From Macrostomum lignano (Eukaryota): a stretch of 64,000 nt of DNA. The position numbers and the translations under genes were made by a program. The stretch covers positions 1-64,000 of the forward strand of contig NIVC01000624.1 of assembly GCA_002269645.1 (NCBI GenBank), in the 5' to 3' direction. Shown one piece after another: positions 6,380 to 48,577 of this stretch. The notes under the pieces were generated by a model. That model had not been told where the DNA came from. It saw nothing but the letters and a program-made list of their open reading frames with translations, and ran no database searches. Position 1 is the first letter of the stretch, and each line of letters opens with the position of its first letter.

Positions 6380-17041
<10,662 letters not shown>

Positions 17042-23584: not shown

Positions 23585-24255
23585 CTCATCGCACCCACCT
23601 CACTCCTCGCACCCACCTCACTCCTCGCACCCACCTCACTCCTCGCACCCACCTCACTCCTCGCACCCACCTCACTCCTCGCACCCACCTCACTCCTTTC
23701 ACCCACCTCACTCTTCACACCCACCTCACTCCTCTTTCACCCACCTCACTCTTCACACCCACCTCACTCCTCTTTCACCCACCTCACTCCTCTTTCACCC
23801 ACCTCACTCCTCTTTCACCCACCTCATTCCTCTTTTACCCACCTCACTCCTCTTTTACCCACCTCACTCCTCCACCCACCTCACTCCTCTTTCACCCACC
23901 TCACACTTCACACCCACCTCACTCCTCTTTCACCCACCTCACTCCTCTTTTACCCACCTCACTCCTCTTTCACCCACCTCATTCCTCTTTTACCCACCTC
24001 AATCCTCTTTTATCCACCTCACTCCTCTTTTACCCACCTCACTCCTCCACCCACCTCACTCCTCTTTCACCCACCTCACACTTCACACCCACCTCACTCC
24101 TCTTTCACCCACCTCACTCCTCTTTCACCCACCTCACTCCTCTTTCACCCACCTCATTCCTCTTTTACCCACCTCAATCCTCTTTTATCCACCTCAATCC
24201 TCTTTTACCCACCTCAATCCTCTTTTACCCACCTCACTCCTCCACCCACATTCCT
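23585..24255. repeat. 17-21-bp CACCCACCTCACTCCT-family minisatellite
   Basis: 18-bp units CACCCACCTCACTCCTCG followed by 21-bp units CACCCACCTCACTCCTCTTTY. Confidence 0.9.
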
Positions 24256-24691
24256 CCTCTACTCATCCAAATTCATTAAAAAAGCAGTTGTCAATATAGG
24301 GTCGGAACTGTCTTATTTTGAAACATTTTTGGCGTCTGGATTGCCCCTCTTTCGACTCTTGTTTGAATATGGTTTCAGTAAATGCTGTCTACTCATGTGT
24401 CACAGCCATCAGTGACTCCGCTGAATCGCGCTGAAAAATATCAGAAAAAAAGTTGAAAATCTTTTTTTGCAACAATTGCTGCATTTTACGAGTCAAACTT
24501 ATTTAATAGGGCCTTAAGCACCGCTCGTCAATGGCAGACATCCGGTCTCAGGCTGGGTGTTTCGAGTATGCAGTCTCATCACAACTGGATCTGTATTCGG
24601 CTATGTATATACAATATAAGAACGTTCGAAAAAATGTTCTCCCATTTATGAAGCTGTCCACATTGGCATAGCAACTAACCAGTCAGGCAAG

Positions 24692-25838
24692 ATGAGTAAT
24701 TCTCTTCTGCCAGCCCTGCTATTGTTAGCGACAGTCCTGTTGCCTGTTCGCAGCGAGTCAGAACTGGCTGGCTTGCCGACTGACCGACCGTTCAGCTCCG
24801 CTGAGGACCGCCTGGTGACGAGGCTGCTGCGCAGTCTGGGACCAGCTGGCGCCATCGCCAGGCCGATGGGCAGGAACACCACCGAGCCTGTGACTGTGAG
24901 CCTGGAGGTGTCGCTACAGGGACTGGAATCTGTGCAAAGCAGCAGGGCTCGCTTCTACGTGTGGCTCACAATGGCAAGTAAATTCGTTGTTCTGCAATAT
25001 GTCCGTTGATTTGGAGCAGTTGGGGCAGTGCCTGTCACAATATGGGCATGGAGCAGTTGGGGCAGTGCCTGTCACAATATGGGCATGGAGCAGTTGGGGC
25101 AGTGCCTGTCACAATATGGGCATGGAGCAGTTGGGGCAGTGCCTGTCACAATATGGGCATGGAGCAGTTAGGGCAGTGCCTGTCACAATATGGGCATGGA
25201 GCAGTTGGGGCAGTGCCTGTCACAATAAGGGCATGGAGCAGTTGGGGCAGTGCCTGTCACAATGGGCATGGAGCAGAAAGTGTGGAATGCAGTACTCGGT
25301 GTCATTTAATGTTGCAGACTTGGTCAGACCCCAGGCTGAGCTGGGACCCAAAGAACTTCGGCGGCCTCACGAAGGCGGCGCTGCCTGCCCACCTTCTGTG
25401 GCTCCCGGATGTCCGACCGTACAACGCGTAAGTGAATATAAGATTCTTACTATCTTACTATTACAGGTATATGTGGTATGTCAATCATACACTGATTTCA
25501 ATGGCTTTCTTTGCAGCGGCAAGTACCAGTTAGATAAGGAATCCGCAATGCGAGCCACGGTTGACTACGACTCGAAAGTTGTCTTCGTACCGCCAGCTAG
25601 TCTCAGCGCTCCCTGCTCTCGGCAGGACAACGGCTCGATACACTGCAGGCTGGTCATGGGCAGCTGGGTGTGCAATGGCTTCGAGCTGGATCTGCGGCTG
25701 GGCGAGAATGCCATCAGCTGGGAGATGTTTGAACAGCATGACAGGTGGGAATTGGCTGGAGCATCCAGTCGGCGCACTGAAGCTCTTTACAGTTGCTGTC
25801 CTGAACCGTTCGTCAGTGCTCACTACACCATTGTGTGA
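24692..25838 (+). CDS. Secreted acetylcholine-binding-protein-like protein (Cys-loop receptor ligand-binding domain only), 237 aa, 3 exons
   Basis: Exons 24692-24973 (ATG/gcaagt, GC donor), 25318-25427 and 25517-25838. Signal peptide, then EDRLVTRLL...RP, VWLTMTWSDPRLSWDP, LWLPDVRPYN, VVFVPP, C-x9-C, MGSWV and loop C YSCCPEPF, then YTIV*. No transmembrane exons were found before the next gene. Confidence 0.85.
25013..25276. repeat. 37-bp intronic minisatellite
   Basis: Unit GGAGCAGTTGGGGCAGTGCCTGTCACAATATGGGCAT, ~7 copies. Confidence 0.95.
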
Positions 25839-25944
25839 GTAGCTCGTACAATACTCATACGTCTGCTTGTGCTTTTGAGCTGCGTGTTGAGCAGACTTAG
25901 TTTTTAATTGTTAAATGTAGAGGATTGTGGAATGCGGCGGCTGC

Positions 25945-26230
25945 TGGATGAGTGAGGCTAGTGGAGGAGTGAGGTGGGTGGAGGAGTGAGGTAAGTGGAG
26001 GAGTGAGGTGGGTGGAGTGAGATGGGTGGAGGAGTGAACCTCCACCAACCTCACTCCTTCACCCACCTCACTCCTCCGCCCGCCTCACTCCTCCACCCAC
26101 CTCACTCCTCCACCCACCTCACTCCTCCACAAACCTCACTCCTCCACCAACCTCACTCCTCCACCAATCTCACTCCTCCGCCCACCTCACTCCTCCACCC
26201 ACCTCCCTTCTCCACCTACCTCACTCCTGT
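25945..26230. repeat. CACCCACCTCACTCCT-family array in fold-back arrangement
   Basis: GGTGGGTGGAGGAGTGA units at 25945-26037, then the reverse-complement units at 26038-26230. Confidence 0.85.
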
Positions 26231-27195
26231 GAGTGGATGGCTCCCTCACGTCCGACCCGCTCTGAATGGGGTGCAGCAGTCAATTTAGATAGCAAATTCC
26301 AGTGAACGCATCTGAAAGACAAGCAAGAAATCTCCAGGCTGGTTGGATAAAACGCAAATTGCTGCCGCTACTAATAGTCTAAGTAGTCTACTTGGTATTT
26401 CTATTTTTTCTGTAAGTTATTCTCTAACTAATATTACTCACTATTTACAACGTGTAAGCTTCGATCAGCTGCTAACTAACCAGGACCAGCACAGCTTAAC
26501 TTACTAGTAAAATTATCGCTTCTGCCACTGTCTAGTGGGCTAAAAAACTACTTGTTTAGGGATTGCAAATTAAATATTGGTGGCCCCACATGACCCCGGC
26601 TGACTCACTCAATTAGGCGAATTTTAGCCTCGATCCAAAGTTAATTCATAATTCATTTTATTTTATTACGAATGCTAATCTTGCTTAGCTCAAGGTGACA
26701 AGGCTAGCTTAGCAGTTCAGGTGAGACAAAGGCGGCGTCAGATTACCAAAAAGCTAATCTGGGGATTATTCTAGCTAGCCAGAGAGTAATAATAAGAAAA
26801 TATCAGCACCACAGGGACAAAGCTGATCTTTCAATTGATATTGAAAGCCAAACGCAAAAAGAGAATGCAATTCCGTTTGACTGTCATTGCTCAGCCGGGG
26901 GGACTGCATGCAGCGGCAGTGAGAGAAAGTCTCTCAAGTCCCAGCCAATCAAATTCGTTCTGGCCTCTGACGCAGCCGGCAGTCTGGCTCCCTCACTGGC
27001 CTCGTGGCTCATGGAGGAGGCGGTTGGTCAGGCTGGGCTGGGCTGGCTGCAGAGCGCCAACAAGACTAGGGAGGCCTGCCTACCTGCCAGCATTGACTTG
27101 CTCAGCCTCTCAGCCAGACTCAACATAGTTGTCTTCTCTTCTACCTCGTAAGAAGCAATCGTAGGAGACCCCCCCGGATACTACAGGCTGCCCGA

Positions 27196-47659
<20,464 letters not shown>

Positions 47660-48577
47660 CTCAGACAGCCAGCCAGGCCAGATAGCGCTAATCCGGTAAT
47701 CCCATCAGCCTAGCAACTGGGATTCCAACTCTTCACACTCAATATATTTATTTATTGTTCTGAAAAAAATAAGCCTGCTTTTTTAGTACACCGTCTCAGT
47801 TTTTTGTTGTAGAACAAAAAATTCTAGCAAACTGTTAGATTTAATTTACTAATAGTAGTACGACAATGTTTTAGCAACTATTCTATCGCATAGCGCGCAT
47901 AAATAATTGTTCATATCCCGAAAACGTATTGTTTTAGCTTTCTAGAGCATTTTTTGATTGTAAATTTTAACCATGTGTCTGATAAAAAGCTGGTTAAAGT
48001 TTGCAGTGCTTTTGTTTATAATAGGAAAGAAGCGACTCTAGACGACTCAAAAACGACGAAATGTCACGGGTACAAGCCGTCAAAAAGTCGTCAGAGTCGC
48101 AGAAGACTAAGTGCTTTTTATGTGTTTAATATGTGCATGAAAATCGCTTCTGTGCTATTGTTATACTTATAAACTACTGCGAGTAGGTAAAAAGCGAATT
48201 TAATTATTCATTATTATTTATAAATGTTTTAATTATATTATTCCCAATGTGTGCACACATGTGCATGTGCGCTGTGGTGTGGCAAGCATTTTCGGTTGCC
48301 ATGTTACTCCGATGTCAATGATGTAACTGTTGTGCCCTAACTGAAATGCCCCCTCTATCATACCTATTGAACCCCTCTATTACAGTGGCTGAAAAACTAA
48401 ACTGACTGTATTCAATTTAAATATACGATGTGACAGTTGCTGACGCTGAAGAGGTAACCTTAAATGATGCTAAACTAGCTGTATCATTATGTCACAATTC
48501 ATTGGCTTTTATTGACTTACGCAATTTCTAGAGGGTCGAAACTTCATTTGTTTATTTCGGTGCCATTGTGATTAGTG

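Follow-up and report, generated by a model that had tools for sequence, protein, structure and literature searches.

Does the gene at positions 24692 to 25838 (plus strand) of this Macrostomum lignano contig encode a soluble relative of the acetylcholine-binding proteins (AChBPs), or is it what remains of a ligand-gated channel? We addressed this question in a window of 64,000 nucleotides (nt), the whole stretch of DNA analyzed (assembly GCA_002269645.1, contig NIVC01000624.1, positions 1 to 64,000). An earlier note, made from the letters alone, had proposed a soluble, AChBP-like gene that was not a broken channel. That proposal was upheld: the predicted protein has a complete nicotinic-type ligand-binding domain (LBD), the window holds no exon for transmembrane (TM) segments TM1 to TM3, and the M. 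lignano paralogues have no channel domain, which supports an AChBP-like domain-only gene rather than a broken channel. The gene is a new, essentially unannotated member of a widespread domain-only group, none of whose members has been characterized in its phylum.

Three exons splice into a 714-nt coding sequence for a product of 237 amino acids (aa). The gene model comprises the following features.

24606 to 24619, plus strand: TATA-like stretch TATATACAATATAA, read from the sequence about 75 to 85 nt upstream of the ATG; a possible core promoter.
24692 to 24973, plus strand: exon 1, with the ATG at 24692, encoding a signal-peptide-like segment, the N-terminal helix, the first beta strands and the loop D Trp91.
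24692 to 24754, plus strand: signal-peptide-like segment, codons 1 to 21 in exon 1.
24974 to 25317, plus strand: intron 1, phase 0, GC-AG, with donor GCAAGT (ATG/GCAAGT at 24974).
25318 to 25427, plus strand: exon 2, 110 nt, encoding TWSDPRLSWDP...WLPDVRPYN(A) and including the loop A Tyr129.
25428 to 25516, plus strand: intron 2, phase 2, GT-AG, 89 nt (GTAAGT...GCAG).
25517 to 25838, plus strand: exon 3, the remaining ligand-binding domain, with 318 nt to the donor at 25834/25835 and the TGA at 25836 to 25838.

Exons 1 and 2 can be joined in frame only through the GC-AG intron, since the GT at 24978 is out of frame; GCAAGT is consistent with the usual consensus of GC donors. Exon 1 encodes the helix SAEDRLVTRLLRSL and closes with ...VWLTM, collinear with an exon end in a paralogue (...VWIQM). 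The single hydrophobic segment of the protein covers residues 1 to 19 (Kyte-Doolittle value of 1.86) and is followed by V-R-S/E. The only Pfam family matched was PF02931 (Neur_chan_LBD), with an E value of 1.1e-28 over residues 54 to 234, in keeping with the complete binding domain claimed at the outset. Also borne out was the claim that the protein stops where TM1 should begin, as the TGA coincides with the LBD/TM1 boundary. A 37-nt minisatellite of 7.2 copies (97% matches) at 25012 to 25276 occupies most of intron 1.

Each of the alpha-type binding residues named earlier (loops A to D and the last Phe) was found at its motif: W91 of loop D in YVWLTM, Y129 of loop A in RPYNA, W181 of loop B in GSW, and the loop C residues in the third of the elements below.

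25614 to 25646, plus strand: shortened Cys-loop C164-SRQDNGSIH-C174, a C-x9-C loop without FPFD, with an N-G-S sequon at N169 (codons 25629 to 25637).
25665 to 25673, plus strand: loop B Trp181 and then Cys183 (WVC), the fifth and unpaired cysteine.
25788 to 25811, plus strand: loop C, Y222-S-C224-C225-P-E-P-F229, from residue reading and alignment.

W91, Y129, W181, Y222, C224-C225 and F229 align with their counterparts in Aplysia AChBP and in receptors. Among the PDB matches listed, the best were all AChBPs or nicotinic subunits, with Aplysia AChBP constructs at the top (8e-27 to 1e-24) and alpha6, alpha7 and beta2 subunits next (~1e-23 to 1e-22). An AlphaFold model of the monomer, with a mean predicted local distance difference test (pLDDT) score of only 62.6, consists of an N-terminal helix and a beta-sandwich, and superposes on whole AChBP chains with target-normalized TM-scores of 0.70 to 0.79 (Aplysia and Capitella AChBPs included). 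Its moderate confidence follows from an alignment of five sequences only.

The earlier note had treated the short Cys-loop as independent evidence against a broken channel. The C-x9-C loop without FPFD is indeed present, but it is not peculiar to this gene. We defined domain-only homologues as those that stop within 45 residues of loop C without a hydrophobic helix (n = 70 Cys-loops); 68 of the 70 lacked [FYW]PxD in the loop, and spacing was mostly x9 (16), x10 (19), x11 (11) or x12 (8). In TM-bearing homologues, by contrast, C-x13-C was found in 57/63 and FPxD in 59/63. A short Cys-loop is thus a hallmark of the whole domain-only class. Named domain-only proteins were retrieved from bivalves, gastropods, amphioxus and a copepod. 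The remark that AChBPs are known mainly from molluscs holds for the characterized proteins, which come from gastropods, a bivalve (ACCBP) and Capitella (PMC3423370), but domain-only genes are numerous in molluscs, annelids and cnidarians alike: Jiao et al. (2019) counted 4 to 34 "LBD"-only models per genome in these groups and none in vertebrates, with flatworms outside their sampling (PMC6896357). In the library searched, no paper on a flatworm AChBP-like protein was found.

Closer relatives came from M. lignano itself. Three word-indexed protein searches with the 237-aa query gave almost nothing; an exhaustive search of representative proteins returned 2987 matches at E ≤ 0.001. The best full-length matches, at 47% identity, were M. 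lignano hypothetical proteins of 247 to 269 aa (Mlig018664g2/g4/g5/g6 and Mlig011179g1; PAA75741.1, PAA56211.1, PAA85864.1 and UniRef A0A267FPN5), uncharacterized entries named "Neur_chan_LBD domain-containing protein." They share with the 237-aa protein a C-x9-C loop with an N-x-S sequon (CDRLRN[KQ]SMSC), the absence of a TM domain or PF02932, and the 110-nt and 318-nt exons with both phases equal. They differ in having an extra intron past the signal peptide, GT intron donors, Phe in place of the loop A Tyr, and a terminal exon for a Lys/Gly/Asp-rich tail. Their exons were mapped exactly in GCA_002269645.1 (185, 110 and 318 nt, plus a signal-peptide exon and a terminal exon of 73 to 82 nt), each locus being a compact gene of 2.3 to 2.7 kb with no PF02932; at the two P0152 loci (L001 and L002), the adjoining genes lie on the opposite strand.

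The paralogues also bear on how the protein ends. A possible splice donor overlapping the stop codon had been pointed out in the earlier note, together with a short non-membrane tail through the acceptor at 25920. The donor is conserved, and it is used in the paralogues: their 318-nt exon terminates in ...CTTGT/GTGAGTAAA, with the same GT/GTGAGT over TGA, so that the TGA is read there upon intron retention, and the annotated product is spliced from this donor to a tail exon encoding LDKKRKGKDGKGKGRPRGEEDDD, a charged 23-aa tail, and never to a channel. At L001 (NIVC01000864.1), positions 9073 to 9857 form a minisatellite of 20 copies of a 40-nt unit, made up of the final ~25 nt of the 318-nt exon and the donor GTGAGTAAA; that paralogue's last intron thus opens with some 20 tandem copies of exon end and splice donor. 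The elements that concern the 3′ end of the 24692 to 25838 gene are these.

25835 to 25840, plus strand: conserved splice donor GTGAGT over the stop codon, use of which ends the exon in phase 2 after ...HYTI(V).
25920 to 26154, no strand assigned: inverted minisatellite hairpin with 115-nt arms and a 5-nt loop (RNA fold of -194.9 kcal/mol, z of -19).
27196 to 27358, plus strand: first exon of the next gene, with its own ATG, its own hydrophobic leader and a GTGAGT donor.

Joining the donor (GT/GTGAGT at 25834/25835) to the acceptor at 25919/25920 gives the tail V-GLWNAAAAG and a stop. The hairpin, which begins 82 nt past the stop codon, consists of two opposed arrays of a 17-nt minisatellite (GGAGGAGTGAGGTGGGT / CCTCCACCCACCTCACT) and includes the candidate tail exon at 25920 to 25952. 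Lying inside an inverted minisatellite, that exon is doubtful, which corrects this part of the earlier proposal. Phase-2 acceptors enumerated from 25870 to 27200 gave short tails only, and the options examined add at most a few non-membrane residues, with a single exception, an acceptor whose use runs on into exon 1 of the next gene. Arrays of the same 17-nt repeat family lie at 23592 to 24242 and, inverted, at 28527 to 28705, bracketing the AChBP-like gene.

One public entry is nearer still than the paralogues. UniRef A0A1I8IKX8, an 82-aa M. lignano "Neur_chan_LBD domain-containing protein," is identical to the 237-aa protein at 65/66 positions over residues 142 to 207 and has the identical Cys-loop SRQDNGSIH. 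It differs in starting at an internal Met and in diverging after EQHDR into a 16-aa tail, LQPRRRAHKWSLWKVA, for which the 64-kb window gave no significant match (best tblastn E value of 0.1). By sequence, it evidently represents the same gene, or an allele or homeologue of it, and the GC donor may be what halted the gene predictor. The near-identity also agrees with an origin of the window in M. lignano or a very close relative. Cys183 is Tyr in this entry and in most homologues; it could be an allelic or homeologous difference or, alternatively, a site for an intersubunit disulfide.

Two further relatives, P0167 (48% identical to the 237-aa protein) and P0004 (37%), are encoded by uninterrupted open reading frames (ORFs) of 236 and 252 aa on Logan contigs of 0.9 to 1.05 kb (runs SRR28338164-6). 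Neither has TM segments, and one of the two contigs has an AATAAA in its 3′ flank; we read these contigs as probable mRNAs of domain-only proteins. In a neighbor-joining tree of 145 sequences with 200 bootstraps, the 237-aa protein, two M. lignano sequences and the two Logan-contig proteins formed a clade in 99.5% of replicates, within which the 24692 to 25838 gene is one of at least three diverged lineages. Every member of this clade has the N-x-S sequon midway along the nine-residue loop, even P0004, which has lost both Cys-loop cysteines.

We consider it probable, taking these observations together, that the locus is an intact three-exon gene for a secreted, LBD-only AChBP-like protein, predicted to form a soluble pentamer that buffers or scavenges a ligand. 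The signal peptide would be cut near residue 21, and N-glycosylation would be expected at two sites, N62 and the Cys-loop residue N169. Assembly in the manner of an AChBP would place W91, Y129, W181, Y222 and F229, with the C224-C225 pair, at the subunit interfaces of the pentamer. Such a box could hold acetylcholine or another quaternary or protonated amine through cation-pi contacts, and the protein would then buffer or scavenge that ligand extracellularly. With no channel domain to couple, the Cys-loop may have come down to nine residues and lost FPFD. The C-terminus would be ...HYTIV with the last donor unused, or a short non-membrane tail with the donor used.

Several points weigh against this reading. 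Transcription of this copy is presumed, and no full-length protein for it turned up in the protein collections searched. Pentamer formation and ligand binding are predicted from residue conservation, the putative signal peptide was called by inspection and hydropathy only, and the confidence of the AlphaFold model is moderate. The Cys183 codon (TGC at 25671 to 25673) makes the number of cysteines odd. The donor of intron 1 is GC here versus GT in the paralogues, possibly a weakened site, and the loop A Tyr is Phe or Ile in those paralogues. Downstream, no homologue of the paralogue tail exon was found (tblastn, blastn and tblastx over 23 to 29 kb recovered the three coding exons only), and the nearest plus-strand A(A/T)TAAA lies 730 nt beyond the stop.

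The replacement of the loop A Tyr means that acetylcholine is not necessarily the ligand of the family. It is one reason to consider that the soluble domain-only protein acts outside cholinergic signaling, by binding a peptide, a toxin of dietary or algal origin or a small amine other than acetylcholine, or through a structural or secretory role such as that of ACCBP in biomineralization. The loss of both Cys-loop cysteines in P0004 points the same way, and the unpaired Cys183 could form disulfides between pentamers. Nonneuronal relatives of AChBPs are known, among them ACCBP and the dodecahedral BgAChBP of hemolymph (PMC3423370), as are lophotrochozoan nicotinic-type subunits with ligands other than acetylcholine (PMC10338036). 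We nevertheless regard a role outside cholinergic signaling as unlikely, given that the aromatic box of this copy is complete and of the alpha7 type and that its vicinal cysteines are present. Judging from AChBP structures, no other sequence features predict the binding of acetylcholine and nicotine as well as these two.

It is distinctly unlikely, in our judgment, that the family is functional while this copy is a silent or decaying duplicate, mis-spliced or unexpressed and drifting toward a pseudogene in a repetitive, polyploid genome. That possibility draws on the GC donor, on Cys183 where the near-identical public fragment shows Tyr, on the missing tail exon, on the minisatellites in intron 1 and the 3′ flank, and on a sole public gene model of 82 aa. 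However, the three exons keep an intact frame throughout their 237 codons, no residue that defines the fold or the binding site has been lost, and the GC donor conforms to its usual consensus. Of the 87 positions that do not vary among the other three lineages, the protein retains 63; counted in the same way, P0004, which is encoded on an mRNA-like contig, retains 63/92. Nei-Gojobori ratios of nonsynonymous to synonymous divergence (dN/dS) were 0.29 between two M. lignano paralogues (dS of 0.06) and 0.22 between a paralogue and P0167. The values for this gene against the other clade members, 0.35 to 0.43, also fall below 0.45 and are merely indicative because dS is saturated.

Channel exons were sought with three queries: human alpha7 in tblastn, the post-loop-C parts of 54 diverse receptor homologues in tblastn, and a local TM1-TM3 profile hidden Markov model run with no filters on all six-frame stop-to-stop fragments. 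These genome-only searches found no TM1-TM3 or PF02932-like exon on either strand of the 64-kb window. Two candidates were set aside. The in-frame peptide that follows the stop, VARTILIRLLVLLSCVLSRLSF, looked like TM1 in the alpha7 tblastn search and was treated as a chance match because it went unscored by the TM1-TM3 profile even without filters. The peptide RRLSAFYVFNMCMKIASVLLL, encoded in AT-rich sequence at 48101 to 48163, resembles pre-M1/TM1 ("RRLSAFYVFNM...") with tblastn E values of 0.3 to 1 across the 54 queries; it was rejected, and judged a chance match, on the grounds that no TM2- or TM3-like sequence follows. That the three exons form the 5′ part of a gene for a full-length receptor subunit, with TM exons beyond the 64 kb or reached by long-range or trans-splicing from 25834, is scarcely credible: the good GT/GTGAGT donor right at the LBD/TM1 boundary and the weak match at 48101 to 48163 speak for it, but the unfiltered profile found no TM1-TM3 signal in the 38 kb downstream or elsewhere, another plus-strand gene begins at 27196, the same donor joins a 73- to 82-nt tail exon in the paralogues, the relatives' contigs finish without TM segments, and the Cys-loop lacks the coupling motif.

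Where such a gene came from is a separate matter. The M. lignano paralogue, a domain-only gene of amphioxus and a receptor gene of Lingula all have the phase-0 intron after VW..M as well; the phase-2 intron after PD..YN is common to all genes mapped. The 110-nt exon between them is found in the Lingula receptor gene as well, and its two flanking introns are canonical nicotinic positions. Among the genes mapped, a phase-2 intron at the LBD/TM1 boundary occurs only in those of Macrostomum; neither the domain-only genes of bivalves, gastropods and amphioxus nor the Lingula receptor gene has it, and the mapped bivalve and gastropod genes have a different 5′ intron pattern. This distribution hints at separate truncations in different phyla, short of proof. 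The earlier note had raised an independent derivation and named phylogeny as the check. The clade itself is firm, but independence is weaker than was implied, for nodes deeper than this clade have bootstrap values of at most 24%. Matched against a profile of the clade, AChBPs and receptor LBDs score alike (1e-37 to 1e-31). In a look for receptor genes of M. lignano itself, none of the 10 matches checked came from this species.

One account of this history can be put forward tentatively, although we hold it to be doubtful. A presumed flatworm clade, independent of the molluscan and annelid AChBPs, would have arisen by truncation of a subunit at the lineage-specific phase-2 LBD/TM1 intron. The donor over the stop would then provide two C-termini, a bare ...Y-x-I/L-V by intron retention and a charged tail by splicing, and a glycosylated nine-residue mini Cys-loop would replace the coupling loop. 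As the sole copy with the full alpha7-type box, the 24692 to 25838 gene might encode the one family member that truly binds acetylcholine.

AChBPs serve as the principal structural surrogates of nicotinic receptors. To our knowledge, what is known of their own biology (transmitter buffering, biomineralization and hemolymph assemblies) is confined to molluscs and a single annelid. To these two phyla, a clade from flatworms with a glycosylated nine-residue Cys-loop would add a third, and structural studies would gain a new loop variant. RNA interference, transgenesis and in situ hybridization can all be used in M. lignano, which would allow tests of what a soluble acetylcholine binder does in vivo. 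The locus also illustrates how a GC-AG intron and dense minisatellites can reduce such a gene, as publicly annotated, to a fragment of 82 aa. Specialists would find the gene unsurprising, since dozens of domain-only nicotinic genes have already been counted in the genomes of lophotrochozoans and cnidarians; it is a real yet fairly ordinary addition to the AChBP-like group.

The next gene begins about 1.36 kb downstream on the same strand, with the first exon at 27196 given above, and as a separate plus-strand gene it limits the AChBP-like gene to ~24.6 to 27.1 kb. It gave no Pfam match, and neighboring ORFs yielded nothing usable in Pfam. Its first intron starts with a 0.5-kb (GACA)n array (27368 to 27876). 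Tandem repeats are extremely dense throughout the window, with 47 Tandem Repeats Finder (TRF) rows at a score of ≥200 in 1 to 64000, including (TCTA)n of 1.8 kb, (GACA)n/(AGAC)n of 0.5 to 1 kb and many minisatellites with units of 14 to 55 nt; many of them yield long spurious ORFs in several frames. At 6534 to 8246 lies a 570-aa ORF, rich in Ser, Lys and Arg, built of 132-nt (44-aa) tandem repeats, with a subthreshold Pfam match to the Cep57 microtubule-binding domain (25.9 bits against a cutoff of 31.3). Rfam and tRNA scans were empty.

Among known systems, the closest in kind are the molluscan AChBPs (Aplysia californica, Aplysia kurodai and Lymnaea stagnalis), secreted ligand-binding domains of ~210 aa that, like the 237-aa protein, have no TM helices. 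They have in common with the 237-aa protein the aromatic box, the vicinal Cys pair and a short Cys-loop without FPFD, and match its AlphaFold model with target-normalized TM-scores of 0.70 to 0.74; they differ in sequence, with 27% identity only, and in a C-x12-C rather than a C-x9-C loop. The AChBP of the annelid Capitella teleta (PDB 4AFG/4AFH), a soluble protein from outside the molluscs, gives TM-scores of 0.76 to 0.77 on the same normalization at 25 to 26% identity. The LBD of alpha7-type nicotinic receptors shares the binding-site residues, including the alpha-type Y-x-C-C, with PDB matches to 7e-23, and the receptor gene shares the 110-nt exon and its flanking intron phases. Unlike that receptor, the 24692 to 25838 gene is without TM1 to TM4 and without the C-x13-C FPFD loop.

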